In this document: positions 7,764 to 49,385 of the stretch, one piece after another | Layout: each line of letters opens with the position of its first letter | How positions within the stretch are numbered: the stretch's first letter is position 1 | NCBI GenBank assembly: GCA_004431415.1 | Contig: QPMI01000017.1 | Coordinates: 372,001 to 436,000 of the forward strand | Direction: 5' to 3' | Length of the DNA stretch: 64,000 nucleotides | From: Cyanophora paradoxa CCMP329 | Lineage: Eukaryota; Plantae; Glaucophyta | Position numbers and translations under genes: made by a program | The notes under the pieces: generated by a model | Databases searched by the model: none | Told to the model about the DNA's origin: nothing | Seen by the model: the letters and a program-made list of their open reading frames with translations, nothing else

Positions 7764-8805
7764 ATGGCGCCCGCCGCAGTCCCGCTTGCGACATACCACG
7801 CATTCCTCCAGCTCATCCGCCATACACCCACGCCCGCGGCTCTGGCGACAGCAGCAGTCCCGCAGCACGCAAGAAAGCCCATTAGCGTGAATTCGGTTGC
7901 GCTCACATGCGCGTGCCGCAGCGAGGGTGCCGCCGCGCCGGCACCCTGCCGCATCGCGAGCTTTCCGTGGTATTCGCCGCGTAGTCGGTGTGAAGGGCGC
8001 GTTCGCCGGCCGCGCGGCTTAGCCGCGCCACCTGCAGGTCGATTAACGTGCTCGCCTTCGTGGATCTGAAGTGCGAGGTCGACCTGAGGACGGTGGCGAT
8101 GAAGGGCCCGAACGTGGAGTACGCGTACAAGTCGGCGCACGTCACAATGCGCCACCGGCGCCCGGAGGCGACCTGCCTCATCTACCAGACCGGCAAGGTC
8201 ACCTGCGCGGGGGCCAAGACGGAGGCGGACGCGAAGGCCGCGCTGCTGCGGACCGCCCGCGTCCTCCGGCGGCTCGGCTTCCCCGTCAAGTTCGCCGGCT
8301 TCCGCGTCACAACCGTGAACGGCTCCTGCGAGGTCGGATTCCCCGTCCGCCTCGAGAAGCTCGCGCGCTCTCGTCAGCACTTCAAGCACACCAGCGTGAG
8401 CGCCGCGCGTGCCCGGGCCGCGGCCCTCGCCCGCCAGCTGACCCCCCCGTGCCTTGCGTGGCGCGCAGTACGAGCCCGAGCTGGCGGCGCACCTCACGTA
8501 CCACATGGAGCAGCCCAGGGTCGTCCTCCTCGTCCAGAGGAGCGGCAAGGTCAAGATCACGGGCGCCAAGGCGCGCCCGCGCCCTGCGCCGCCGCGCTTT
8601 CTCTGCATCTAACGGCGCCTTCGCTTAGAGCCGCGCCGAGGTCCACGAGGCGTTCGCGCGCATTCACCCCGTGCTCTGTGAGTATCGCAAGAGGTCCGTG
8701 CCGGCAGCTTTCTGTTACGCTATAAATCTACCGGATAGTGCTGCAGCAATGCTAACCCTGCTGCATATGCCACGGAAATCAGCAGTTAAACGCATCGCCT
8801 GCTAA
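7764..8805 (+). CDS. TATA-binding-protein-like factor (divergent TBP paralogue)
   Basis: Both TBP repeats are recognisable: NVLAFVDLKCEVDLRTVAMKGPNVEY...PEATCLIYQTGKVTCAGAKTE...LGFPVKF...GSCEVGFPVRLE|YEPELAAHLTYHMEQPRVVLLVQRSGKVKITGAK|SRAEVHEAFARIHPVL. Both termini are approximate. Confidence 0.88.
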
Positions 8806-10043: not shown

Positions 10044-11517
10044 ATGCCCTGGATTCTTGCAACATCCGCCGCCGGCGCTGGAGAGTCAGAGTCCGCGCCG
10101 GCGAGCCGGACCCCAGTGCTGGAGGCCAGTGACTCTCCGTCTCCAGTGCCGTCCCCGGTGCCGGGCGTGGACGAGGAGGCGCACGCTCCCGAGCACGAGG
10201 CGGCGTCGCCCGTTATCATGAACTTCCAGCCCCTCCTGCCGCCCTCCCCGACGCGGGACGGCCTCGACCTTCCCGAGGCGACGCGGAGAGACTACGAAAA
10301 CAGGTGCGCCGCGAGGGGGGCCGGGGCGCGGACCGGGGCGCCGGCGCCGAGCCCCGCGCCGGGCGCAGGTACGTCTCGTACAAGGTCCTGAAGCAGGCGG
10401 CGCACGAGCTGAGGAACTCGTTCACGGCCATCATGGGCCTCATGGAGATCGTCGAGGACCTCTCCTGCGACTCCCTCGCCCCCGAGCAGAAGCAGATCTT
10501 CAAGGAGATATGGTGCGGCGCCGCGCCGGCCCCGCCCTTCGCGCCGCGCCCCGCGAGCGTCGCGCGCAGGCAAGCCATCGACTACCACCGGAGCCAGCTC
10601 TCGTGCCTGGACTCCGAGGCGAACGTGCTGGCGTTCACGGCGGCGGTCTCGCAGAGCCAGGACAACTGCGGGGGGCGTCCCGTGGGCCTCCGCGAGATCG
10701 ACCTCGGCCAGATGCTCGACTACATGACCGTCTTCTACAAGGTCCCACCCCCTCCTCTCCTTTCCTTTTCCTTCCTTTCCTTCGCCACGGCTGAGCGGGG
10801 GGCGGGGCGGCAGGCGGAGTGCGAGCGGCGGGGCCTGACGCTGGAGGTCGAAACGGACGAATCGATCAAGGGCCAGTTCATGGCCGACATCCTCCGCATC
10901 CAGCAGGCGCGCCGCCCCCGCCTCCGCCCCCCCCCCTCCCCCCCCCCCCCCCCCCCCCCCCCGCGCCCCGGCCCCTCCCGCCGCGCTGACTCGCGCGGGG
11001 GCTGCAGGTGCTGCACAACTACCTGTCGAACGCGATCAAGTACACGTTCGAGGGGTCCATCACGCTCTACGCGACGGTGGAGCCGGCGCCGCGGCGGGCG
11101 GAGACGGAGGGGATCTTCCGCGTGGTGGTGCGGGACACGGGGATCGGGCTCTCGGCGGAGGACATGCGCGCCGTGTGGGACGAGGACCGGCGGGTCGTCA
11201 ACGAGCAGACGCAGAACATCCCGGGGACGGGCACGGGCCTCTACATGTGCAAGACCATCATCGAGCGGCTGGGCGGGGAGGTCGCCGTCCGCTCCGTGCT
11301 CGGCGAGGGCAGCGAGTTCGAGTTCGCCATACCCGTCTACCGCGTCGGCAAGCGCCTCCCCAACGGCACCCTGTGCGCCCCCGCTCCCCCCCCCCTCCCT
11401 TCCCCCCCCCCTCATTCGTTTTTAACGGTACCCCGCAGGTACCGAGCGGTCCCAGGCACGGAGAAGAGGCGCTTCTTCGACTTTGGGAACACGACGACGT
11501 ACGAGGCGATCAATTGA
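10044..11517 (+). CDS. Histidine kinase (HisKA + HATPase_c); no sensor or receiver domain seen
   Basis: H-box AAHELRNSFTAIMG, N-box LHNYLSNAIKYT, G1 VRDTGIG, G2 GTGTGLYMCKTIIERLGGEV, then SVLGEGSEFEF. Start codon is approximate. Confidence 0.88.
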
Positions 11518-26556: not shown

Positions 26557-28948
<2,392 letters not shown>

Positions 28949-29277: not shown

Positions 29278-31685
<2,408 letters not shown>

Positions 31686-32214: not shown

Positions 32215-35200
32215 TCAGAGGTAGAAGAGCTTCTCGGCGAGGGCGCGGAGGTGCGTCTGGTAGGCCCGGAGCGTGTCCGCGGAGGGCCCGTGCGACCCCT
32301 CCGCGTACACTGCCTCCTCGAAGCGCTGGGGGGGGGGGTAAGAGGGGGGGGTACAGGAGGGGACGAGGGCGAGGGGTACCACGGCGAGCTTCTCGGCGTA
32401 CTTGAGGGGCGCGGGGACTGCCCGGGAGGGGTCAGGGCGCGGCGCGGCCGAGAGGGGAGAGGGGGGACCAGCGGACCGCGGATGGGCCCCGCCCAACCGA
32501 AGCTGCGGCGGCGGTCAGCGAGGGTTCCGAGAAGGCGGGGGGAGTGCAGAATGGAGGGGGAAGGGCGCACTAGGCCTTGGCGAGCTCGTTGGTGGCGCGG
32601 CTGACGGTGCGCATGCCGCCGCGCACGAGCGCCGCGTCGATGGGGTCCGTCAGCAGCTCGTACCGCGTCGGCTTCGCCGCCCCTGCCGGCCCCGCGCAGC
32701 GCTCAGCGGGGGCGCGGAGGAGCGGGCCCGGCGCGCGCACCGGAGGGGGCCTTGTGGGAGATGAGGAAGAACTCGCGCTCGTTCTCCTGCGCGGGGGCGG
32801 CCGCGCGTGAGGCGGCCGAGCTGGAGGGGAGGGCGAGGGGCGGGGCGGGGCGGCCTCGCACCATGACGACCTCCTGGTCGATGCAGGTGCCGGGCTCCGG
32901 GTCGCCGGGGTCCCGCTCCTTCTGCAGGGGGCGTCAGGCGGCGCCCGGGCGGCGAGGGCGCGCGCTTGCGGCGGCGCGCACGGTCAGGTCTGCCGCAAGG
33001 GGCGCGGGGCGGGCGGCGTCAGCGCGCGCGGGGGCCGGAAGCGGCGGGCGGGGGCAAAGAGAGTAGCGGAGCACCGCCCCAGACGTTGAGATGGACCCTG
33101 CGGAGCGGGCCGGGCGGCGCTGGGGTCAGCCAAGCTCAACACCTGCCCCCGGAAATGAAGGCAGGCGCGGGCACCTCTTGGAGACGAGGAAGATGTGCAC
33201 GTCGGGGACCTTGCCCCTGGATCAAATTTAAAGCGGGCGTAAGCGGAGGATTCGCGGGAGGGCGGGCGGCGGGCGGGCGGCGGGCGGACAGGCGGAGGCG
33301 GCAGGCCTCGCGGAGGGCGAGGCCCTCGTTCCTGGCGATCGCCGCCTGGCCCCCGGCCCCCTTCGCGTTCTGCCGCCCCGCGCCCGTCAGGCTGAGGCCG
33401 CCCAGCTGCAGGCGCAGGCGGGGCCCCAGGGACGGCGCTGGCGCGCCTCTCGGTAGACGATGATGCGGGCGGGCGCCTGCGCGGCGCCGCCGGGCGCCCT
33501 GGGCCTGTTCGCCGGCGCGCGCGCCCACGCGTCGACTGCGCGGCCCATCGCCTCGGTGAGCTCGAGGACCTGCCCCGTCTGCGGCGCCTGCCGCGAAGAT
33601 TGGCGCCCGCCCACAGGCGAAGATTAACGTGAAGGGATCGGTGGCGCACGAAGGAGAGGACCTCGGAGTAGTAGGCGGCCCCCGAGTCGTCCGTCGAGAC
33701 CGTGATTGCCGCCGTGCGCGCCCTGCGGCGCACTTCAGAACACATCGAGAAGCGCGTCCGCGCCGCCAGTTCGCGGCGCACTTGACGATGGTGAGGCCGA
33801 CGTACATCGTGCCCCGCAGCTCCTCCGGCAGCTGCGGCGGCGCCGCGCCGACCGGCCACGTCAGGAGCCAGCGCGGCGAGCCGAGGGCTAGGAGAGGCGG
33901 GAGGCAGGGTGCACCGGGACCTTCCAGAGAGCCCCGCCCTCCTTGCACACGATCTGGCGGGGGCGCGCCGGGCGCTTCAGAGGCGAGCAGGGGCGAGCTC
34001 GAGGGGGCGGCAGGGGAGTCCAACCTGGCCGAGCAGCCCGACTGCGGCATCCCTCCACTTGTCGCCGTTGACGGTCCTGCCGCGAGAGACTCGCTTCGAA
34101 AAGCAGGGAAGGAGGCGGGTGCAGGAGAGGAAACCGAATCCCAGCGCACTCGGGTCTGACGAACTGGGAGGGGCACTGGAGGCGGAAGAGGAGGTGGCGG
34201 GAGAGCTCCGGGTAGAAGCCGGCGTCGTGGCGGCCCGGGAGCAGCACGACCACCGCGTCCGGCGCCCCGCCCCTCCTCGTCTCCTGCGCGCGCAACGCCG
34301 CTTCGAATTCGCCGGGAGATCGCGGCTGGAGGCCGGCGGGCAACACGCACCGCTTCGAGCGCCGTGATGAAGTTCGCGGCGGACTTCCCGCCCACCACGA
34401 CCGGCACGTTCTCCCACGTCTTGTTCAACAGCTCCTGCGTCCGCTGCGTGTGGCGAGTGCGTTTGACGCGAGCTCGAGTCTCCGGGCGAGCGCCAAGGCA
34501 CATCCGTGGGCACACACCCGCAGGAGGTCCCGCTCGATCGTCCTTGCCGTGTTCTCCGCGCCCTGCTCGTACAGGACGAAGATGCGCCGGTTCTTGAACT
34601 CCGGCGCGACCGCCGGCTGGTTCTTCCCGATCTCCTGGCGCCAGTTGATGCCGACGGACTGCCGCCCCCCGTTCCCGAACGTGAGCGTCGTCCGCGACGG
34701 CCCCACCTCGACCTGCAGGGCACGGTCCCGAGTCAGCCGGGCTGGGCAGCACGCGACTTCGACTCCGGCGCCCTGCGGCGCACCTGGAACTTGACCATAT
34801 TTTCCGCCACGGAGAGGCCCGTCTGCGCCCCGCGGCGTGAGAGATGGTGCATGGTGCCGCCCACGGGCGCGCACGGCTTCCAAGAGGGCCTTCTGTTCCG
34901 GCTCTGCTCCGAGCTGCTCGAGCCGGAATTTCTGGAGGTCCTGCGGGGGCAACGATTTGAACGTTAACGGGGTCCGGCCGGGGGCGCTGCGGGGCGCACG
35001 TCGTGCTTCCAGCGGGAGCCGCGGAAGTTGTCGCCCCGCGGCTTCGTGAACTTGGCCACCTCCCGCGTGATCTGCCGCTTGTCGCTCTCGTCCTCCGGCT
35101 TGTTCTGCGCGCCGCGTCATGATCAAATCAGGGAAATACCGATGGATGCGCAAAAGAGCACCACGCAGGCGAACTGGGAGAGCAGGAAGACCTGCGAAGA

Positions 35201-38001
35201 AGCGGGGCGATCACGATCACTACGGGAAGAAGGCGGTCGCGAAACGGATGGAGCGACGTTGCGCGCACCTCCATCGGCTCCTCCTCGAGCTCCTCGCCGC
35301 GCGCGGCGGCCTCCTTCCGCCGCTGCCGCCGGGCGAGCTCCCTCTCGTGCTCGAGCCACGCCTGCGAGGTGCGGAGCTCGGGGGCCGGCGGCTGCGCGAG
35401 GCCGTTGAGGTCCGCCGACGCCTCGATCGTCTCGACGTCCCCCGCCGCCGGCGCGCTCGCCCGTGCCGCGAACTGCTGGACGAGGCGCGCGTCCGCCTGC
35501 TGACGCGTCTCGCCGCCCTCCGCCGGCGGCCGCGGCCGCCGCCTCCGCGGCCGCGTCCAGGCCCGCAGGATCGGCTGGGTGGGGGGGTCCACGGAGACCT
35601 GCGCCGGGGTCTCGATTCCTGGGCAGAGAAAGACCGCCGAGATCTCAAACGTGACCTTGTACTCGTCGGTGACGTGCTTGCGGAACGAGACCTCCCTGTT
35701 GTTCTTGATGAACGTCCTGCAGGCGGAAACCAGGGCGTCGGCCGCGGTGGGCCGAGCTCGAGCTCAAAGCAGCGGCGCGCTGCGCGCACGACTCGCAGGT
35801 CTTCTCCCAGGCGACGGGCTCCTTCGGGTCCAGGTCGTACACGCGCTCCTGCAGCACCATGCGCCCGTCCGTCCGGTTGCAGTACCTGCGCCGCTGTGAG
35901 AACGGGCGCCCAAGCCCAGCGCGGGGAGGCGCACCTCATGTAGACGGTGTAGCCCTTGCTGGCGTAGTCCCGCAGCCTCCTCGTGAACTCGGCCCTGGCC
36001 TGCGCGGGGGAGGAGGTGGAGCGCTCCAGCTCCCTCCACTCGTCGTACGCCGTCTCTGCCGTCGGGGCCGTCGGCGGGCGCCAGATGGGACGTGCACGCG
36101 GGCGGGCGGGCGGGGCGCACGGAGGCGGAGGACGCGCCACTCGCGCTCCAGTTGGATCTGGCGGCGCGGTGAGAAGACCGGGCAGGAGGGCCGCGGGGAC
36201 GGGCGGGCGGGGACCATGAGGCCGCCCTGGGTCTTGAGGATGCTCGTGAACATGCCCTTCCTCAGCATGAAGCCGCGCACGTTGAACGCCTGCTGCGAGC
36301 GGTCCTCGATCATCTTCCGCCCGTAGCTCGTGTAGTCTGCGCGCGCGCGGCGACGTCCGTCAGATATAGATCTGAAATCGCGTGAGTTTGGTCGCTACAG
36401 CGCACTCTTTGCGTAGCTGATGAGCCGGCGGTTGGCGAGCCGCTGTGGCGGGACGAAGCGGCTTTAGTTGCGCCGGCGGCGCGGCCTCAAAGCGAGAGCT
36501 CACGAGGAAGTGCTCGCAGACTGGCTGCTCCGGGGAGAAGACGTAGTCCTTGATGTACTGGAAGTTGACCTGGATGCGGTCCCCGTCCTGCGGGCTTCTC
36601 AGCGGGCGCGGGCGCGATCGCGAAGTGGGATCGGAGGGGCGTGCCGGGTCGGAGCTGTTGGTGATCGCGCACTTGACGCGCTCGACCCTCTCGCGGACGT
36701 CCGGGAAGGGCGGGTTGACGAGGTAGAGGACGGTGGGGTTGCGCGGCGCCCGGTTCGTGAGGAGGAGCGGCTGGGGCCACTCCCGCGTGGCCTGGAGGGC
36801 CCACGGGCGCAGCCGCCTCGCGACGCCCTCGAGCGCCGCCTCGCGCATGTCCGTCCCCTCCACGTCCGGCGTCATGAAGACGGCGAACTCGAAGACCCGC
36901 GGCTGCCGCTGCTTCTCCGCCGGGGCGGACTGCGCGGGCGGTCAAGGCCGACGCCGCGCAGGCAGAGGGACGGCGAAGCACCGTCTTCCACATGTTCACC
37001 GTCACCTCCAACCTCCTGGCGCCGCCGCCCCCGGCCTCCCAGCCGCCGCCCCCGCGCCCCCCGCCCCCGCCCCAGCCGCCGCCGCCGCCGCGGCCGCCGC
37101 CTCGGCCGTGGTGGCCCCCTCCGCGGCCGCCGCCGGAGCCCTCCCCGCGGCCCCCGTATCCGGAGCCGCCGGCCCCCCGGTCCCCGCTGGAGCTCGAGCC
37201 GCCGCGCGGGTCGTACCCCCCCGGGCCTCCCGCCTCGAGCCGGGGCCGCTTCTCCTCCCGGTCGCCCCCGCGCTGCTGGCCGCGGTCTTGGTTGAGAAAG
37301 CCGCGCTCCAGGCCCCGAGGGCGATCACGGTCTTCCTGCCGCGGCTGCTGGCGCTGCTGCTGCTGATCGTACTGCTGCTGATGGGCGGGGGCGGGGGCTT
37401 GGCCGTAGCCTGGAGGCACCGCAGGGTAGCCATGAGAGGGCGGCTGCTGGCCATGGCCGTAAGCAGGCGAAGACTGCTGGGAAGCGGCCAGAGGTCCCGA
37501 AGCTGGTGGCATCTCAGTTAGGCTGGCAAGAAGCTGCTGCAGCTCTATGGCGGCAGAAAGATTTGCTGGCGGTGCTGGGCCATGGGCAGCCCCGAAGCCG
37601 CTCGGAGCGGCCGGGGCTGGCTGCTGGCCGTACGCGTGCGGCTGCGCGTACTGGCCAGCATGACCGTGCGCGTACGGCTGCTGCCCTCCGTATTGCTGCC
37701 CGCCGTATCCTTGCTGCAGCTGCCCGCCGTACGGCTGCTGTCCGCCGTATCCGTGCAGCTGCTGGCCGCCGTATGGCTGCTGCCCGTCGTACGGCTGCTG
37801 TCCATATATGTAGCCTTGTGCGTTTCCGCCCGAGCGCGAGCTCGCCTGCAGAGCACGCCATGAGCGCCGAGAGGCCGCGCGACGACGAAAGCGGGTGTCT
37901 CTAACCTGAAGTCCGGGCGGCGGATAGTGCTGTCCTTGAGCATGCTGACCAGGAGGCGCCGCCGGCCAGCCAGGCGGCGGACCATGGCCACCAGGATTCA
38001 T
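32215..38001 (-). CDS. PIWI-like Argonaute with substituted catalytic tetrad
   Basis: Q/G/Y-rich and RG-rich N-terminus, LEVTVNMW, a PAZ-like region, MID motifs FYPELSR...CPSQFV and QIVCKEGGALWKV, PIWI motifs TMYVGLT, ARIIVYRE, PGTCIDQEV, EFFLISH, AKPTRY and VPAPLKYAEKLA, ending KLFYL*. Confidence 0.85.
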
Positions 38002-38360
38002 CTGGGCGGCGAATCGTTGCGGATCGGACGCGGGATTGCGTTAATCGCGCATCGGGGGTCTTCTCCGACCTTTTCGGTGCGTATCCGGCGCACTCAGAGG
38101 GGCGGTCGACGATAGCGAGGCGAACGTGCCTCTGGCTGCTGACGGACCTCTGCGGCGGGCCCTCGTCGCTCACCGACCGCCCGGAGCGGTCGGGGGGCTT
38201 CGGCCGAGATTGGGGTGAACTTTGGGGGTCTTTTGGGATGAGCTCGGGGGGTATCGCGTGCAATCCCTGGTTCGGCCGGAATACGGCCGCGCAATCAGTG
38301 CCGGCCGCCGTAGCTCGCACAAAGACCCGAAAGCGGTGACGGACCGGACTCGAATGCGAG
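38002..38360. promoter_or_regulatory. Putative bidirectional promoter and 5' UTRs shared by the PIWI-like and Dicer-like genes
   Basis: Only about 360 bp separate the two divergent start codons (38001 on minus, 38361 on plus). No specific motif was identified. Confidence 0.5.
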
Positions 38361-41300
38361 ATGCCTGGGCAGCCGACGGCGATGGACGGGCGCGCGGTCG
38401 AGTCGTCATGGGCAGCACCCCAGGAGCTGAAGAATGCCTTGCAAGTCCTATCTACCCACGCGGCAGTGTTCCTGCGACGGGTTCTCATCGAGAAGCACGG
38501 AGGCGACGGAGACGGCAGAGCGGGCGTCAATGCAGGCGACGCTAACGTGAAACGCATCGCTCTCTTGTTCACCAGGAAATATGCACGTATCAAGTGCCGC
38601 CGCGTCGCAAGAGAACACTCAGAGGCTGATCGTTCTCTCGCAGGTGGAACTGCGCCTCGAGAAGATCGCGGGGGGCCGGTGCATGAGCGGCAAGCTACAC
38701 AGGACGCTCGACATCGTCGCGCTGCTGGATCTCCGCCAGACCGGAAACGCCGAGATTCATGTCGGCTGCAAGGTGTGCTGCCTCGAGTCGGCTGCCTTGC
38801 CGCTAGCTCGTCGACGTCCTGCTGACCCGCGTCTGTCTTCGAAGGACTGTGGCACGGATTTCCTTCTGCTGGCGAGCGGCCGCACCCTCAAGGACGTGTA
38901 CCGGATGACGAGGGGCCGCCCGCAGCGTGCGCACCCCTATGCGGGCCCCCGGTGGGCGCCTCACGGCGCCCCGCAGGCATGAGCGTGGACGCTGAGCTCC
39001 GGCCGTGCATCGCGGCCCTCGCGCGGGCCGTGGAGGCCTGCGAGCGCGACCCGAGGCTCTCCCCGCAGGAGCGCGACCGCTTCCTGATCCTCCTCAAGAA
39101 CGGGCGGCCCTGCGCCCCGGTCCGGACCATCAAGAGCGAGGACTGCCTGCCCCGCGACGAGCGCCACGAGCTGGCGCGCCCGCCGCACGCCGCCGTGGCC
39201 ACCCGCGCGCGGCGCCTCGCCTCTGACGCACGCGCGCGCGGCGGCGCAGTACGCGGCGCTGGGGCGGGCGATGCACGCGTACGCGCCGGAGGGGAAGGGC
39301 GTGGACCGGCACATCGGGCTGCTGCGGAAGCGGGGCCTGCCGCCGGGCCTCCTCGAGACTCTGCTCGGCAGCGAGTTCTTCTTCACCTTCGACGACCGCG
39401 CCGTGCGCGCCCGCACCGCCCGCCGCCCGCCGCCCGCCGGCGCCCGTCGCGAGGCCGGGGCGCAGGTGCCAGACCTGGAGGAGCTCGCGCGCGGCAAGCG
39501 CTGGCACATGCTCCCCGGCGTGGACGCCAGCGGCGGCCGCGCGGCCATCCCGGGCGGTGCGGCGCCGCCCCCCCGGCCCGGCCCGGTCCGCCCCGGGGCC
39601 GACGCGAGCAGGCCCGGCGTGGCGGGGCCTGTTCATCCCTGCGATGGACGCCCAGCAGCGGGTCCTGGCGGGCCAGGTCAAGCCCTTCGCCTCGACCGCG
39701 GGACCCGCCCTCAACGTCCCCAAGCGCGCCCGACCTCCGCCCCGCCCCGGCCCGAGCGAGCGCGCGCTCCTCGCCGCCTCCGCCGCGCTGACGCCGGCCG
39801 ACCAGGTACTCGACGTGCGGGGCGTCGAAGCGGATGCCGTGCTTCCTCCTCCCCGAGCTCGACATGAGCCCGCCCAACTTCGTCTGGGTCCCCGAGACCC
39901 TCCCCGGGGACCGCAGGCCGTCCGCCCCCCTCCCCGCCCCGCCATCGCCCCCGCCCTCGCCGCCCCCGCCCACGCGGCCGGGAGCACAGCTGGTTGGGCC
40001 TCACGGAGGGCGGGCTGAAGTCGGCCACCACCGCCGCCTACTTCCAGATACCCGTCTTCGGGGCCGGCATGTGCGCCCGCCCCGCCCGCCCCGCCCCGCC
40101 TGGCGGCCCCGCGTGTAAACCGGGCGGGGCGCAGCGGCTGCGGGGGCGACTTCTGCGCCTCGCTGCCCTTCTTCAGGGACGCCTTCCGCTCCCTGCAGGC
40201 CCGCTTCGGCACCAAGCACGTGCGCCGCCCTCCCCCCGCGCCCTCCGCGCCCTCCGAGGGGCCCGGCAGGTGGTCTTCTTCCCGGACGCCGGCTGCTTCG
40301 AGAACGCGCAGGTGGCGCGCCGCAACGCCGAGACCCTCCTTCTCTTCCGCGACGAGCTCGGGTACCCCGCCCCGCAGCCAGGCCGCCCCGACCCGCGCCG
40401 CCTCATGATCACGGCTCGCCCCGGCAGGGTGGAGCCGTCGGTGGCGTGGTGGCCCTGGCTCTGCTCCGCCGACGCCGACGCCGCCGGCCAGCGCAACATC
40501 GGTCCGCCCGCCCGCCCCGCCCTTCGAGCTCCGCCCCGTCGCTGCGCTCTGCCCTCTCCGAGCGCGCAGACGACTCAGCGACTTCGTCCGCGGCGCAGAC
40601 GACTTCCTGGCGAAGGTGGTGAACTTCCGGGGCGTGCAGCTGATCTCGGCGGGGAGCTTCTGGGCGACGCACGAGGCGGCGGCGCGGGACCCGAACCTCG
40701 GCGACGAGCTCCGCCGGCGCCGCCTGGAGGCCTGGGAGGCCGTCGTCGCCGCCGTCCCCTCCGAGGTCCCCCCGCCCCCTCCCGCCCCGCCCCGCGCTGC
40801 GCCTCTTCGCTTAGCCGGCCCCGCCCCGGCGCAGGCGCAGCGGACGCGGAACGTGGCGCCGCCGGCCCCGTGGCTGCTGCGCGTGTACGAGCCGATGGCG
40901 GAGGGCGCCGAGGGGGCGCTCACCGTGTGCGAGGTCTTCCCGGAGGGCGCGCCGCCGCCCATCCAGCACCGCGAGCCGCCCCGCCGCCGCCCGCCCGCCT
41001 CCGGCTCCGGCGACCTCCTCGTCGAGAGCTCCGCCCCTCCGCCGGCCCCGCCCCTCGCCCCGGTGACCGCGCCGACCGTCATCACCCACGTGGCCATCCA
41101 CCACACCGTGCGCTCCGCCCCGGGCCCGCCTCGCCTCGTCCGCCCCCCGGGGCCTGACCCGCCTCCCTCCCGCAGCCGCCGCCGAACGGCTGGCACCCGC
41201 AGGGGCCGGCGCCCGACCAGTCGGGCGTCAGCGTCGCGGCCTGGCAGCAGCAGCCGTACTCTGCGCCCGCGCAGCCGGCGCCGATGGAGGCCCAGCGCTG

Positions 41301-44300
41301 GGAGCCGCAGCCGCCCGCGCAGTACACCAGCGGCAGCAGCAGCGGCAGCAGCGTCAGCAGCGGCGGCAGCAGCAGCAGCGCGCCGGCGGCGGGACAGCCG
41401 GCGGGGGCGGGGGCAGCGCGGCAGCCGGCGCATCGGCGCGTCTCGTTTGCAGAGGGCGGGAGCGGGGCGGGCGGCGAGGCCGGGCCCGGGGCCGGGGCGC
41501 GTACCGGAGCGTGCCGCTGGCGTACGGCGACGACGGGGAGCCGCGGGGCGGGGGCGGCGGGCGCTCGCGGGCGGGGCCGTCGGGCCTCGGGAGGCGGGCG
41601 GGGGCCCCGCCGGAGCACCCGCAGGCTTCCAAGCGCTCCTGCCCGCAGGCCCTCTCCGAGGCAGAGGTGAGAGGGCGGCCCGCCCCGGGCCCCGCGGACG
41701 CCGACGCCGCCGCCGACTCGGCCGGGCAGCAAATCGAGCGGGCGCTGCGGGCGTCGCTGAAGGAGAAGGAGGCGCTGGAGCGGCGGCGCGCCGCGGAGGC
41801 CGACGAGGCCGAGGCCTTTGGCGATCTCGAGGAGGCACCCGCCCCGCCCCGCCCCGCGCGCGCCCGCCGCCGACGCCGCCGCCGACTCCGGCGCGCAGGA
41901 GCTGGAGCGGGCGAAGCGGGAGTCGCTGCGGGAGGCGGAGGAGCAGGCGCGGCGGCGGGCGGAGGGCGCGGACGACGCGGAGATGGAGCAGCTCAGCGCC
42001 GTCCTCTCGGAGAGCGAGCGCCTCCACCGCGAGGAGCAGGAGCGCCTCGCCGCCCAGTGCGCCTCGGCCCTCCCGGCCTGGCCCGTCCCGGCCCGTCCCG
42101 CTGACGGCGTTGGGTCGCGGGGGCAGGGCGGCGGGGGAGGAGGAGGCGGAGGTGGAGCTGGCGAAGGAAAAGAGCGCGCTGGCGGCGGTGGAGGAGGCGG
42201 AGGTGCGGGAGGCGCTGCGGCTCTCGCAGGTCCCCGAGCGGCTGCGGCGGGCCGTCGAGGCGCAGTTGGGGCGGCGGGCCCCCGCCGGCCCCGAGGCCTA
42301 CCTCGACCTCGACGACCTGAGGGACGGCGGCGGCGGCGGGGGCGGCGGGGGCGGCAGCAGCGACGAGGAGGCGGGGCCGACTCGGACGGCGAGGAGCCGG
42401 CCTGGCGCTGCTCGGACGCCGCCGCGGGGGCCGGCGCCGGCGCCGGCGTCGGCGTCGGCTGGCTCCCCGCCGCGGCCGCCTCTCAGCCCCACGGGGAGGA
42501 GGAGGCGCTGCCCGCCGCGCCGCACACCCTCACGGCGTTCTCGAGCGGGGCGCGGCCGGCGGCGGCGGGGGGCCGCGCAGGGGGCGGATTACGCCATGAT
42601 CCGGCTGGAGGCGGCGCAGCGGATCATGGAACGCCAGGGCTGGCACCCCGGGGAGCCCCTGGGGCGCCGCGACCGCCCGGACGCCCTGGGCCCGGGCGAC
42701 GTCGTTCCCGTCGCCGAACACGTGGCGGGGCAGCTCGACCGCCGCGGCGTCGGCGTCCCGGGGCCCCTCGTCCGCGCCCAGCCGGCCCCGCCCCCGTCCC
42801 CGCGCGCCCTCTCCCCGTACCCGCCGAGCCGGCTCCCGCCCCGCCCCCGCCCCCGTGCCCGTGTCCGTGCCCGGGCCTTCCGGCTATGGCGAGCCGGCCC
42901 TGCCGCCCCTCGCCGGCAGCTTCCACCCCGCCGCTCTCGCGCCCCCGCACGGAACCGGCCCCGGCTTTGCCCCCGTCGCCGCCGCAAACGCCGCGGCGGC
43001 GGTGCCGCACGGGGCGGGGGCGGCGGGCTGCCGGCACCCGGCGCAGTGCTGCGCGCGGCTGCACGCGCTGGAGGCGCCGTTCGTCGCGCTGGACGCGGCG
43101 GTGCGCTGGGCGGCGGTGCTGGCGATGCAGGCCGAGGTCGAGGCCGCCCTCCGCTGGCTCCTCTTCGCCGCCTGGCTCGCCCACCCGCCCGCCCGGCCCC
43201 CGCCAAGGCCCCCGCCCCGGCCCCGCCTCCCCTGCCGCACTCCTGCCCGCCCCGCGCCCCGCTCCGATCGTCCCTCCCGCGTACCCCCCTCCATCAGCGG
43301 CCCCATCGAACCCCCGCAAGGGGCCTCATCGTACCCCCCTCCAGCGGCCCCATCGTACCCCCGTCAGCGGCCTCATCGCACCCCCTCCAGCGGCTTCATC
43401 GTACCCCCCGCCAACGGCCTCATCGTACCCCCCTCCAGCGGCCTCATCGTACCCCCCTCCAGCGGCCCCATCGTACCCTCCGCAAGGGGCCCCATCGTAC
43501 CCCTCGCAAGGGACCTCATCGTACCCCCCGCAAGGGGCCTCATCGTACCCCCCGCCCGCGGTCGCTGCCTCTTTTCCTCCGGCGTACCCCCCGCCAGCGG
43601 CTCCCCCGTCCTGGGCCGTCGCGGCCCCCGCGGTGCCCGCCGTCGCCGCCCCTGCGCCCTCCCCGGCGCTCCGGGCTCCCCGCGGGCCCGTCCCGGGTCC
43701 CTCCTCGGCTCCCGCTGTACCCCCGCCCGCTAGGCCGTCGGCGGCGGCGGAGGCGGAGGAGCGGGGTACGCTCTATGCCCACGAGGTCATCTTCGACCCC
43801 CCGATCTGCGTGCGCCTCCGCCCCTGCCCCTTGCCCCGCCGCGCCCGACCCCGCCCCCGCAGGCTTACCCGAAGGATTACCTTGGCGGGCGGGCCTTCCG
43901 CACGTACCACCTCCTCACGCGGGAGCCGCTCGAGGCCCCGCTCGAGGCGTTGCCCGTCGAGCGGGGCCCGCCCCGCCGGGTGACGCTGCGGCCGCTGGGG
44001 CCCGTCGAGCTGGGCGCCCGCGAGCTGGCGGCGGTCCGCCGGCTGAACGCAATGTTCGACGCGCGGCTCCCGGCGGACAAGAAGGACCCGAACTACGGCT
44101 ACATGCCGCGCCACGCCGGCCGCCTCGCCTCTGACCCGGACCCGCCGCTCCTCTCCCCGCGCTTCGCCGCCCCCGGGGCGCCCTACGACGAGCCCGAGCT
44201 GCGGGACGAGGCGCTGCAGGCGGCGCTGCTCGAGGCGGCCGCCGGCTTCGCGGCGGGGCGGCCCCGCGTGCTCGAGCTGCTCGCGGCGCAGGAGCGGGAG

Positions 44301-47119
44301 GGGCCGGGCGGGGCCTGGCGCCCCGCCCTCCGCGCCCTGCTGGAGGACGCGCTGGTGCGGAACGAGCACAGCGGGCAGGTGCACCCCATCGGCCGCGTCG
44401 ACTTCGAGTCCAGCGTCGCCTCGTGCCGCGCCTTCTCGGGGCCCCGCGCCCCCCGCACCACCCTCGTCGAGTACTACGAGGCCAAGGGCCGCAAGGCGGA
44501 GGAGGAGGAGCGGGCGCGCGGCCTCGAGCCGCGGCCCCGGCCCCGCCTCCGCTTCCCCCGCTCCCCGCCCCTCCGCGAGTCCGAAGCCGGCTCCGACGCC
44601 CGCGTGCGTTCCTCGCCCTCGCACCCCGGCCTGCGCCTCTGACTCCCCCTCAGATCGCCCCGGAGCTCTGCGCCGTCCACACGGGCATCACCGGTGCCCC
44701 CGCCCCGCCCCACGCGCCGCCCCGCGCCGACGCGCACTCGCGCGCGGCAGCGTCGATGCACGACGGGGCGGCGTGGCTCCTCGACGGCCTCCACGTCCTC
44801 CTCCAGCGCTCCGCCGCCGCCGCCGTGCGCCCTCTTTGCTCGAGTCCTGAGGGGTGGAGGGTCCTGACGCGCCGGGGCAGGCGGTGCGGCGGGTGCGGGG
44901 GATGCTGGGGATGGGCGAGCGGCCCTTCGCCCGCCCCGACCTCCTCGCCGCCGCCATGCGCCACAGCAGCGCCCGCGCGGAGGCGCCGGCGCCGGCCGGC
45001 GGGGCGCCGGCGGCTGCGCCCGGGGCGGAGGCGGACAGCGAGCGGCTGGAGTTCCTGGGAGACCGCCTGGTCGCCTACGTCGTGCGGCGCGCCCTCGTGC
45101 TGGGCCTCCCCCGCCTCTCCGCGCACGCCGCCGCCGCCCTCTCGCACGAGCTCTGCCGCAACGCGACCCTCGCCCGCGCCGCCGCCGCCCTGGGCCTGGA
45201 CGAGGCGCTGGAGCGGGGCAGGGGCCAGGTCGCCGCCTCCGAGAAGATGCGCGCCGACGCGCTCGAGGCGCTGGCGGGGGCGCTGTTCCTGTCGGAGGGC
45301 CTCCCCGCCGCCCGCCGCTTCCTGCTCGCCGCCCTCCTCGCCCCCTACGAGGAGCTCGACCCGCGGGCGCCCCACGCGCACAAGGTCTCCGCCCTCGCCC
45401 GCCGCGCCCTCGCCGCCGCCCCGGACGCCCCGCTCCCCTCCCCCGCCCTCCCCGCCTTCGCCCCCGCCGGCGGGCCCGGGGCGAGCGAGGCGGAGCTGCA
45501 GGCGGCGGAGTTCGTGGAGCAGACCGTCGGCCACGCCTTCCGCGACCGCGGGCGCCTGCTCGAGGCGCTGCGGGGCGGCCCGGCGGCGGCGCGCCTGGCG
45601 GCGCTGGGCCAGCCGGCCCTCGAGCTCTGCGCCGCCGTCCACCTCTTCGGCTCCCACCGCGGCGAGGCCCCCGGCGGCCTCCAGGACCTCATGCGCGTCG
45701 CCGTCCAGGCGGCCCCGATCCGCGCCCGCTGCGCCCAGACGCTCCTCCTCCCGGGGGCCCTCGCCGCCGCCCGCAAGGGCCTGGGCACGCCCGAGGCCTC
45801 CGCGGAGGGGGCGCGGCTCGCGGACCCCCGCGCCGTGTACGAGGAGGGGGCCGGCCAGGGCGAGCTCGTGGGGGCGCTGGCGGCCCTCGCGGGGGCGCTG
45901 GCCTGCGAGGGAGAGCCGTCGCTCTCCGCCCCGCCCCCCGCCTGCGCCCACTGCGCCTGCGACCTCCCGGGGCACCTCTTCCACAAGTGAGCCGCGCGTA
46001 CCCCCTCCGGCCCCTCCCCCCTCAGCCCGCCTCCCCCGCAGGCTGCTGGCGTGGATCCACCAGGGGCGGCTGGACCCCGGCGAGGAGAACAGGGCGGCCC
46101 GCGAGGCCCACATGCAGGCGCGCCCGCCCTCGCCCCCCTCGCATTTCCCCGCGTGCCCTGAGGCGTCGCGCTCCGCGCGTGGCGCGCAGGAGCCGATCGA
46201 GGGGTGGCAGGCGGCGGGGATGTCGCCCTTCGGGGCGTACGTGCCGCCCTACGAGCTCCCCACCGAGGCCGAGGCGCGGGAGGCGCAGGCGGCGGCCGAG
46301 GAGGCCCGCCGCGCCGCCGCCCGCGTCCGCTTTGTCCCCGCCACGGGCTCTGGCTCCTCCTCGGCGGGCGCCGGCGCCGGGGCCGGCGGCGGGACCCGGG
46401 GCGCCGCGGCCGCCCCCACCGGCGCCAACGCCACGCCCCTCGGGCCGGCCCGGCCCCGGCCCCGTCCCCGGCCCCGGCCTCCGCCCCGACCCCGCTGCCG
46501 CCCGCCCCGGAGCCCTCCGCCGCCGCCTCCGCCTCCGCTACGGCGCCCGCCCCGTCGGGCGCGGCGGGGATGCTGGGGGCGGCGCTGGAGGCGGCGCGGC
46601 AGGTGGCCGACCTGCTCAACGCGGGCCTCAGGGGCGGCTCCCTCCCCCCGCCCAGGCCGCCCCCAAGTACGCCGCCGCCGCCGCCGGCCTCCGGCGGGCC
46701 CTGCGCGAGTGCGGCGGGGCGGGCCCGTGCGGGAGGCGGCGGGGAGCTGGGCGGCACCTCGTGAACGCCGCCCTCACGGGCGTGAGGGGCGGCCTCGTGC
46801 CGCAGGCCGAGGCCTGGGCCCGCGAGGCCGTCGCCGTGTACGAGGGCCTACCCGCGGGCGGGGCGAGGGGCGGGCGAGGCGGGCCTGGAGGGGCGCGCCT
46901 GCAAGGCCTGGTTCGTCCTGGCGCGGGCCCTCGAGGCGCAGGGGCCCGGGCGCGCGGCGGAGGCGGCCGCCGCCGCGGGGCGGGCGGCCGCGCTCCGGCC
47001 CGAGGACGGCGACGCGGCCGCCCTCGCCCGCCGCCTCGCCGCCGCCGCCGCCGCCGCTGGGGCCTTCCGATGAGGCGCTCTGGGGCAAGGTGGATCCGCT
47101 CTATTTTGCTTGCAAATAG
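38361..47119 (+). CDS. Dicer-like protein with N-terminal primase-like TOPRIM domain, UIM-like repeats, G-patch, platform-PAZ-connector, RNase IIIa and degenerate RNase IIIb
   Basis: TOPRIM-like LGLTEGGLKS...VVFFPDAG...VAWW...NIDD; UIM-like EQIERALRASL and EVREALRLSQ; G-patch AQRIMERQGWHPGEPLGR...DRRGVG; PAZ/connector LEDALVRNEH...TLVEYYEAKG...IAPELCAVH; RNase III SERLEFLGDRLV...ADALEALAGALF. No AT-rich intergenic gap lies inside, but several low-complexity segments need extra introns or frameshifts. Confidence 0.75.
43270..43560 (+). repeat. About 21-bp coding minisatellite encoding S-S-Y-P-P-P/Q-A/G heptads inside the Dicer-like gene
   Basis: Repeated cctcatcgtaccccc(t)ccagcgg/gcaaggg units, translating as ASSYPPPTASSYPPPAASSYPPPAAPSYPPQGAPSYPSQGTSSYPPQG. 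Confidence 0.85.
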
Positions 47120-48088: not shown

Positions 48089-49385
48089 TCAGGAAGGGGC
48101 GGGGGGCGGGTTGTAGGGCCCGCGGTGGAGGTTGGAGACGCCGGCCTGGCACGTGGGCATGACCTGCGCGAGGCGACAGCAGCGGCCACGGGGCGCGCGC
48201 AGCCAACGTCAGGGCGCGGACGGGAGGGTTGTTAGGGGTAATTATTTAGGGGACGCGCCTGGAGGTCCGAGACCTGCACGTTCGGCGGGCTGCGGGGGCG
48301 GCCCGATCACGAGGCGCCGGGGGTACAGCGATCGGGGCGCGGGGGGGGGTACCAGGAGGCGGCGTAGGCAACTGCGTCGGCGATGTCCTCCGGCGTCAGG
48401 CAGTCCACGTCCTTGTACCAGTTCTCGGCCTAGGGAGGCAAAGGATGAGGGGGGGTACAGCGCTTCAGGGAAAGGGGTACGCGTTGCGCACCCGCTCCTG
48501 GTCGCCCTTGAAGCGGACGAGGGCGAACTCGGTCCGGGCGAGGCCCTGCGCGGAATTCAGAGGGGGTACAGGCCTCCGCGGGTCACGGGGGTACGGCGCA
48601 CGGGGGATACGAGGGTGACGCGGAGGGGCGTCGCGACGAGCTCGTGCCGAAGCGAGTGGACGTACGCGTCCAGCTGGGAGGGGGGAGTTCGGTGGAGGGG
48701 AAGAGAGCACGGGGGGTACGGCGCACGGCGGCCTTGGTGGAGCAGTAGGTGGCGCCGCCGGCGTAGGCGCCGCCGGCGCCGCCCTTGCCGGCGATGGAGC
48801 TGATGGCGATGACGTGGCCGCGGCCGCGCTGGAGCATGCCGGGGACGAAGGCGCGGATGCCGATGGCCGGCGCGAGCACGTTCGTCGCGAGCATCACCTC
48901 GAAGTCGGCCGGGTCGAGGGCGTAGGAGGGCCCCAGGCCCAGCGCCAGCCCCGCGTTGAGCACCAGCACCTCCTGCGCGCCCGAGGGCGGATCGGCGCGC
49001 GATCGGAGCGATCGGAGCGGGGCGCGGGGCCGCACGACATCACGGAAGGCCTCGGGGAGCGCGGCCGGCAGCGCGAGCATGCGCTCCTTGTCGCGCACGT
49101 CGGCCGCCACGACGTGCACCGCCGCCCCGTGCGCCTCCTCCAGCTCCTGCTGCACCGCCCGCAGCCGGTCCTCCCGCCTCGCCACTGCCCCGCCCCCCTC
49201 GAGCTAGGACGCGGTTCGCACGTGCGCGTGCGCGCGGGGCCGGACGCACGGAGGACGAGCTTGCAGCCGAGCTGCGCGAGCTTGCGCGCGCATGCCGCGC
49301 CGATGCCGGACGAAGCGCCCGTGATGAGCGCCACGCGGCCGGCGAGCGGCGAGGGCGAAGGCGGAGAGGCGGACGTGGACGCCAT
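48089..49385 (-). CDS. Short-chain dehydrogenase/reductase, YdfG-like
   Basis: ALITGASSGIG, VARREDRL, VLNAGLALG, catalytic YCSTKAA, GLARTEFALVRFKGD, LTPEDIADAV and NVQVSDLQ|VMPTCQA. Confidence 0.92.

Follow-up and report, generated by a model that had tools for sequence, protein, structure and literature searches.

A Dicer-like gene with a predicted cyanobacterial TOPRIM-like domain, head to head with a candidate Piwi-like Argonaute gene, in the glaucophyte Cyanophora paradoxa

Two genes of the glaucophyte alga Cyanophora paradoxa that start head to head, one Dicer-like and the other Argonaute-like, raise the question of whether they work together in making and using small RNAs, and of what kind of Dicer and what kind of Argonaute they would be. 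We analyze this locus in a window of 64,000 nts of nuclear DNA (contig QPMI01000017.1, positions 372,001 to 436,000 of the forward strand; all coordinates below are positions in that window), which has a base composition of 58-80% GC and many short introns per gene. The two start codons, ATG 38001 on the minus strand and ATG 38361 on the plus strand, are separated by 359 bp, which confirms the head-to-head layout with a gap of about 360 bp that had been described from the letters alone (the sequence-only reading). One short promoter region probably serves both genes. The plus-strand gene encodes a protein, P0001, that carries Dicer-type tandem RNase III domains in one chain, and whose N-terminal domain is, judged by its sequence, a genuine member of a TOPRIM-like family of cyanobacterial plasmids. 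The minus-strand gene is reasonably read from its motifs as a Piwi-like Argonaute with a substituted slicer tetrad. The explanation that we favor, with modest confidence, is an intact divergent small-RNA gene pair in which the Dicer-like enzyme feeds the neighboring non-slicing Argonaute. That the pair forms a small-RNA module is most likely; co-regulation, a flow of substrate from one protein to the other and any TOPRIM activity are inferred. The linked layout of an Argonaute and a Dicer is known; what appears to be new is a Dicer with a cyanobacterial TOPRIM domain and a dead second RNase III domain, adjacent to a non-slicing Piwi-like Argonaute.

The case for a Dicer-like enzyme begins with the large RNase III exon (44851-45987). 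In a library of 1.84 billion representative proteins, this exon matches P0001 with 99% identity (E-value 2e-217), and P0001 is the sole match below 1e-30; the next matches are generic RNase III proteins at 1.3e-12. The exon has no close relative in the other sequenced organisms of that protein library. P0001 is recorded from EukProt only, without a functional name, and an exact look-up of P0001 in assemblies returned no record. The gene ends at TGA 47071-47073, and the end point given by the sequence-only reading, 47119, is the stop of an overlapping open reading frame that is out of frame with it. Pfam finds RNase III at amino acids (aa) 1663-1749 with an E-value of 1e-16 (1e-16 to 1e-18 across searches). 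It finds no helicase, DUF283, PAZ or dsRBD in P0001 (E-values up to 1 for the whole protein and up to 10 for its parts), in agreement with the earlier claim of a Dicer that lacks both helicase and DUF283. We aligned aa 1600-1990 of P0001 with 16 tandem RNase III proteins that this protein search had also returned (alignment A2). The acidic catalytic residues that a Dicer has in both RNase III domains are found in RNase IIIa only, which retains ERLEFLGD and ADALEALAGA. RNase IIIb reads ARLAALGQ and LVGALAALAGA, with its four acidic positions occupied by A, Q, G and A, and its scaffold residues remain; a single intact site is also what the sequence-only reading had called. The fold supports the tandem arrangement. 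An AlphaFold2 model of the module, built with alignment A2 as its guide, has a predicted local distance difference test score (pLDDT) of 78 and a predicted template modeling score (pTM) of 0.82. Foldseek places it closest to the RNase III domain pairs of mammalian Dicer, Drosha, fly Dicer-1 and Dicer-2, plant DCL1, DCL3 and DCL4, and Giardia Dicer, at a template modeling (TM) score of about 0.6, whereas single-domain bacterial RNase III covers only half of the model, with a TM score of 0.3. For the 286 residues before RNase IIIa, the nearest ESM Atlas clusters carry PAZ and Dicer_platform (0.94, at a low recognition value), and a PAZ/platform region upstream of RNase IIIa is only a lead.

Amongst known Dicers, minimal ones such as that of Giardia intestinalis (PDB 2FFL) offer a close comparison. 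They lack helicase, DUF283 and dsRBD and have a platform/PAZ region ahead of their tandem RNase III domains, as P0001 would have, and the fold model matches 2FFL. The Cyanophora protein differs in its RNase IIIb, which has no acidic residues, and in about 1300 extra N-terminal residues (TOPRIM-like, UIM-like and G-patch-like). The nearest long tandem RNase III proteins (P0002, P0008, P0019 and P0092) were rejected as relatives of the whole protein; their architectures are unrelated (SF1 helicase with CCCH fingers, or dsRBDs), and a primase domain is present in none. In P0002, P0008 and P0092, the two RNase III domains are accompanied by an SF1 helicase (AAA_11/AAA_12) and a CCCH zinc finger.

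The TOPRIM-like domain is identified by its similarity to plasmid proteins. Used as a tblastn query against 72,556 plasmids, the region matches 17 records, all of them from cyanobacteria (Acaryochloris, Synechocystis, Calothrix, Tolypothrix, Euhalothece), with E-values of 5e-7 to 3e-4, and the matches sit N-terminally in plasmid proteins of about 1100-1300 aa. One match, a Tolypothrix protein, carries the annotation of a plasmid replication protein of the CyRepA1 family. There the curated model for CyRepA1, NF042913, covers residues 459-1061 only, so the domain that is common to P0001 is the part ahead of that model. The make-up of the CyRepA family has been described, with an N-terminal region reported as DUF3854/TOPRIM, and the function of DUF3854 itself is unknown (PMC10079941). 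Alignment A1, of P0001 and six cyanobacterial plasmid relatives (seven sequences), has identities of 24-29% to P0001 and 18 invariant columns, which include E373 (LTEGG), K377, D428 (FFPDAG), A459-W460-W461, D470 and D478. A TOPRIM fold has a conserved Glu after strand 1 and an acidic motif after strand 3; these are found as E373 and D428, invariant in 7/7 sequences, and the two would be the metal-site residues of the domain. The ESM Atlas neighbors of the region are DUF3854, Toprim_2 and DNA-primase clusters at 0.97. The homology to the plasmid proteins is unbroken across five predicted introns, which supports this part of the gene model. Beyond the plasmids, we find no homologues of the TOPRIM region in a set of 5.8 billion proteins, and no match by tblastn against phages. 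P0001 is like the CyRepA-type proteins (DUF3854/Toprim-related domain plus DEXDc helicase) in this homologous N-terminal domain, and unlike them in that it lacks the CyRepA helicase region, its gene is nuclear and intron-rich, and the domain is fused in the gene model to an RNase III module. In the six plasmid loci that we fetched (L001-L006), the N-terminal TOPRIM-like domain of the proteins of about 1100-1300 aa goes undetected by Pfam DUF3854; only one of the six is annotated as a replication protein, and ParB- and Rad52-like genes are amongst its neighbors.

The Dicer-like gene is transcribed and spliced. RNA contigs, taken from four runs that behave as RNA and with 100% identity to the locus, fall on the TOPRIM part, on the middle region and on the Dicer core. 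One spliced contig connects TOPRIM exons (39249-39402, junction, 90 nts, junction, 39611-39723, junction, 39806-39919), another connects 40598-40763 to 40833-41107, and a third runs along the Dicer core (43587-43809, junction, 43863-44603, junction, 114 nts, junction, 44881-45149 and beyond). Further contigs cover 41176-41322, 41728-41831 and 42632-42795. The junctions match P0001 except for the annotated intron 43584-43752. The sequence-only reading had proposed RNA as a check of the exon structure; the outcome is that transcription, splicing and many exon borders hold, and that this one intron is contradicted. Joints in the GC-rich middle of the gene, mostly with sides of 20-24 nts and non-canonical ends, were taken as low-complexity cross-matches. 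In the middle region lie also the other two domains that the sequence-only reading had listed besides TOPRIM. The TOPRIM stands, by its plasmid homology and its 18 invariant columns. The UIM is there as a pattern only, for which 0/2000 shuffles reach three matches, and the G-patch stays below threshold (Table 1).

The minus-strand gene is known from our own model. Its donors are mostly GTGCGC and its acceptors GCAG, and it stops at 32215-32217; its 5' exons are uncertain, as are several that are very small. At the N-terminus, tandem DNA repeats (37020-37135 and 37680-37800) give Gln/Gly/Tyr-rich and RGG/GGW repeats, and the model is unreliable there. Seven AGO/PIWI motifs (FYPELS..LQC, IIVYRE, PGTCID, FFLISH, KPTRYELLTD, PAPLKYAEKLA and the terminal LFYL) are each unique in the six-frame translation of the window. 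Every one lies on the minus strand, and they are collinear in the order of the family; for six of them the chance expectation is about zero. For the MID-domain motif in Table 1, the assignment of residues is one that we take from knowledge of the family. The slicer positions read T/E/E/E vs D/E/D/H, with the Glu at the second position plausibly kept. The substituted tetrad that the sequence-only reading had reported is seen directly in GLTIVK, IIVYRE and YAEKLA. The motif IIVYRE would be spliced out if a GT donor at 33458, and not the GC donor at 33446, were in use. In Piwi proteins the catalytic His is part of the sextet YAHKLA, where AGO-like proteins have YAHLVA (PMC8191739); apart from that His, the YAEKLA of the Cyanophora protein is Piwi-type. 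In keeping its guide-binding motifs while its slicer residues are substituted, the predicted protein is like the non-slicing human AGO1 and AGO4 and the slicer-independent Drosophila Piwi. It is unlike them in that it departs from the tetrad at three of the four positions, and in that the Piwi-type YA-x-KLA and the LFYL end are found in an archaeplastid, a group otherwise known, to our knowledge, for AGO-clade proteins.

Table 1. Position of the features of the locus in the window, with the source of each assignment.
Feature	Position	Strand	Evidence
Dicer-like gene, P0001 (EukProt EP00741 tig00000093_g3555.t1), 2263 aa, 29 exons	38361..47073	+	Database match and mapping; spliced RNA contigs match many exon borders
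DnaG-like/TOPRIM (DUF3854-like) domain, aa about 230-510	39307..40696	+	tblastn, alignment A1, ESM Atlas
Residues invariant in the TOPRIM family: E373, D428, D470, D478	E373 40006-40008; D428 40285-40287	+	Alignment A1
Three UIM-like motifs (IERALRAS, LERAKRES, VREALRLS)	41652..42244	+	Pattern only; RNA contig 41728-41831
G-patch-like stretch	42596..42760	+	Pfam PF01585, E 0.012, below cut-off; RNA contig 42632-42795
24-nt tandem repeat, 11 copies, inside the Dicer-like gene	43295..43561	+	Tandem Repeats Finder; coding score negative in all three frames
Platform/PAZ-like region, aa 1325-1609	43863..44824	+	ESM Atlas neighbors; spliced RNA contig 43615-45149
RNase IIIa, catalytically intact by sequence	45022..45342	+	Pfam; PDB sequence search; alignment A2
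RNase IIIb, fold kept, all four acidic catalytic residues lost	45496..45933	+	Alignment A2; weak Pfam match, E 0.076; AlphaFold2; Foldseek
Intergenic stretch between both ATGs, 359 bp; presumed shared bidirectional promoter and both 5' untranslated regions	38002..38360	.	
Piwi-like Argonaute gene, own model, 31 exons, about 1120 aa	32215..38001	-	Codon-bias and splice-site dynamic programming, open path
ArgoL1 match	36212..36289	-	Pfam PF08699, E 0.048 (0.17 in another search), 13.7 bits, below curated cut-off; expected position
5'-phosphate pocket motif of the MID domain, FYPELSRHLLFRLQC; Tyr and Gln kept, Lys to Ser	34173..34217	-	Unique in six-frame translation of the window
PIWI-domain exon LPEELRGTMYVGLTIV(K); first catalytic Asp (GxDVxH) to Thr, GLTIVK	33782..33831	-	Sequence reading
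IIVYRE for IIxYRD; second catalytic Asp to Glu	33447..33464	-	Sequence reading
PAPLKYAEKLA; Piwi-type YAHKLA with catalytic His to Glu	32383..32415	-	Motif unique in six-frame translation of the window
C-terminal LFYL, then stop codon; typical Argonaute/Piwi C-terminus	32215..32229	-	Motif search

Several results weigh against reading the locus as an intact pair of a TOPRIM-Dicer and an Argonaute. The TOPRIM-like family has the motif PDxG, with one Asp, vs the DxD of classical TOPRIM enzymes, and catalysis by the domain is uncertain because of that single Asp. Pfam, PHROGs and NCBIfam see no TOPRIM in aa 140-560, and neither does a profile search of the PDB; PF12965 and PF13155 have no match at E-values up to 10, either in P0001 or in the six cyanobacterial relatives. 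The links to the DUF3854 and Toprim_2 profiles come solely from the ESM Atlas result and the published description of CyRepA. A fold of the TOPRIM region predicted from the single sequence is poor (pLDDT 41) and was not used for fold search. On the Argonaute side, no exon has a significant match when Pfam and the PDB are searched exon by exon. The PDB searches, with five exons or stop-free stretches, gave chance matches or none, and no Argonaute, and two region-restricted searches for an annotated Argonaute protein, made with a long stop-free frame, retrieved nothing. From the domain order N-L1-PAZ-L2-MID-PIWI, profiles match only ArgoL1, and weakly. Since the exons lack significant matches, the identity of the gene rests on the motifs, and it comes from weaker evidence (ArgoL1 at an E-value of 0.048, and the motifs) than that of the Dicer-like gene; the patterns for the motifs were written after the sequence had been seen, which weakens their statistic. 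In the Dicer-like gene, the RNA retains the annotated intron 43584-43752, with contigs unbroken through 43587-43809 (contigs are shown for three of the four runs), and no contig shown bridges the TOPRIM and RNase III parts.

The last two results are also what would be expected if P0001 merged two products, a TOPRIM/UIM/G-patch protein ending near 43731 and a separate downstream minimal Dicer made of the PAZ-like region and the two RNase III domains. With 43584-43752 retained, the upstream TOPRIM frame stops at 43731 unless the frame is shifted earlier, and the public gene model of P0001 is wrong or incomplete at this place because the contigs retain that intron. The 24-nt tandem repeat inside the gene offers ways for such an earlier shift. 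The repeat is probably partly or wholly intronic. Each of its units has a possible GTACCC donor and a possible CAG acceptor, so splicing inside the array would always shift the frame by one. RNA assemblies break at the array, which explains why contigs start at 43587-43615. Frame-restoring GT/GC-AG introns, of length 1 modulo 3, are many, and 238 in-frame paths are compatible with the RNA contigs; the intron 43270-43534, which excises the repeat, scores 54.5, vs 54.1 for the annotated path and 21.9 for the read-through to the stop. Third-position GC keeps its periodicity throughout 38.6-47.0 kb, a stretch that no intergenic gap of low GC interrupts, and a separate Dicer could begin, at its earliest in-frame Met, only about 60 residues into the PAZ/platform-like region. 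We consider two separate products unlikely and are fairly confident that the TOPRIM and RNase III parts belong to a single polypeptide. Two whole genes may still be neighbors without functional coupling that act in separate pathways, their head-to-head layout being nothing more than an instance of the divergent pairs that abound in a compact genome. In the window short gaps between genes are frequent, and so are divergent pairs, as the sequence-only reading had already cautioned. The small RNAs bound to AGO1 in Chlamydomonas are made independently of the adjacent DCL1 (PMC10226591), a warning against assuming that one protein feeds the other. The C. paradoxa genome, however, has one Dicer hit and two Argonaute hits (Gross et al. 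2013, PMC3700990), and with so few such genes a chance adjacency of a Dicer-like gene and an Argonaute is improbable, of the order of 1e-4 by estimate. An uncoupled pair is, in our judgment, a minority explanation that will probably not hold.

Decay of both genes would account for the same substitutions in another way, with the dead RNase IIIb and the dead slicer as marks of a lost function. Catalytic residues are gone in RNase IIIb and at three slicer positions, and there is no close homologue, the gene's own copy, P0001, being all that is found below 1e-30 in the library of representative proteins. The rest of the locus does not look like a pair of relics. About 29 exons in one gene and 31 in the other keep their frames open and have consensus splice sites, GC at third positions is very high (0.93-0.99) in the two long exons of the Dicer core, RNase IIIa and the family-invariant residues of the TOPRIM are intact, and the RNA is spliced. 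Elsewhere, Argonautes that do not slice are functional, and so are one-sided RNase III modules, which also counts against relics, and we give this explanation hardly any credence.

If the pair is intact and coupled, as we favor, the Dicer-like protein would process double-stranded RNA (dsRNA) through its platform/PAZ-like region, its live RNase IIIa and its dead RNase IIIb, with a single active center. One live center implies that one strand is cut per binding event, or that a partner is needed for the second cut; this partner may be a second molecule (by dimerization), the protein's own TOPRIM domain, or another nuclease. The missing helicase would be replaced by the TOPRIM/DnaG-like domain, whose source would be a replication protein of a cyanobacterial plasmid. 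DEAH helicases are activated by G-patch proteins, so the G-patch-like stretch could recruit a helicase in trans. The resulting small RNAs would load into the neighboring Piwi-like Argonaute, and this protein, since three of its four slicer residues are absent, would silence by recruiting factors and not by target cleavage. It is attractive to think that the TOPRIM may make RNA on a template, the ancestry of the domain being the one argument for it. A primase is not needed to explain the dsRNA, because Cyanophora has four homologues of RNA-dependent RNA polymerase (RdRP) (PMC3700990). We are quite doubtful of the more extended version, in which an active TOPRIM (a primase on a DNA or RNA template, or a second nuclease) together with the live RNase III center would deliver guides of defined length into the non-slicing Piwi-like protein, as a primase-coupled pathway of an early-branching alga built from a cyanobacterial plasmid replication domain and a eukaryotic core of RNA interference (RNAi). 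Tetrahymena and fission yeast, in which RdRP complexes bind Dicer, offer a precedent for a strand-synthesizing enzyme physically joined to a Dicer. There, the proteins are separate and the polymerase is an RdRP, whereas in Cyanophora it would be a DnaG-type primase domain in the same gene.

To call the pair an undescribed module, as the sequence-only reading had done, is fair for the fusion of TOPRIM and Dicer, a domain combination for which we found no description in the searchable literature. It is too strong for the linkage. In Chlamydomonas reinhardtii, a green alga, DCL1 (Cre02.g141000) and AGO1 (Cre02.g141050) are adjacent and divergent, the arrangement is conserved in related species, and a role in transposon defence is suspected (PMC10226591). 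The Cyanophora pair is alike in that a Dicer-like and an Argonaute gene of an alga lie next to each other and are divergently transcribed. Orthology of the two pairs is unlikely because the RNase III exon of Cyanophora has no close relative elsewhere. In Chlamydomonas, DCL1 keeps its helicase and AGO1 is of the AGO clade, and we know of no TOPRIM domain reported in that pair. We also considered whether the locus could be the known DCL1/AGO1 pair of a Chlamydomonas-type green alga and rejected it; the product is annotated as C. paradoxa, and the RNase III exon has its one close match there.

A Dicer normally carries a helicase, and a primase-type plasmid domain in its place would be a new build of the guide-producing step in RNA silencing. 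A TOPRIM-Dicer could connect DNA or replication intermediates to the production of small RNAs, and a one-sided RNase III module would be a natural case in which to study how a Dicer cleaves single strands. Amongst eukaryotes with plastids, glaucophytes are a deep branch, and for that reason a linked Piwi-like Argonaute and TOPRIM-Dicer would bear on the diversification of RNAi after the plastid was acquired and on the transfer of cyanobacterial genes into nuclear defence.

By eye, the neighbors of the pair look like ordinary nuclear housekeeping genes. On the minus strand, flanking exons resemble ornithine carbamoyltransferase (1909-2932), tubulin (27652-28501) and a short-chain dehydrogenase (48721-49203), and on the plus strand, a TATA-binding-protein-like fold (8045-8452), a histidine kinase (10301-11382) and an AAA ATPase (30396-30803). 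By this reading the surroundings are ordinary nuclear ones, and not a transposon island or a viral insert. Introns at the Argonaute/Dicer locus are mostly 50-100 nts in size, and their usual donor is GTGCGC. In several predicted introns of both genes, GC (as GCGCGC or GCACCC) replaces GT at the start, namely at 39174, 41835 and 46118 on the plus strand and at 33446 on the minus strand.

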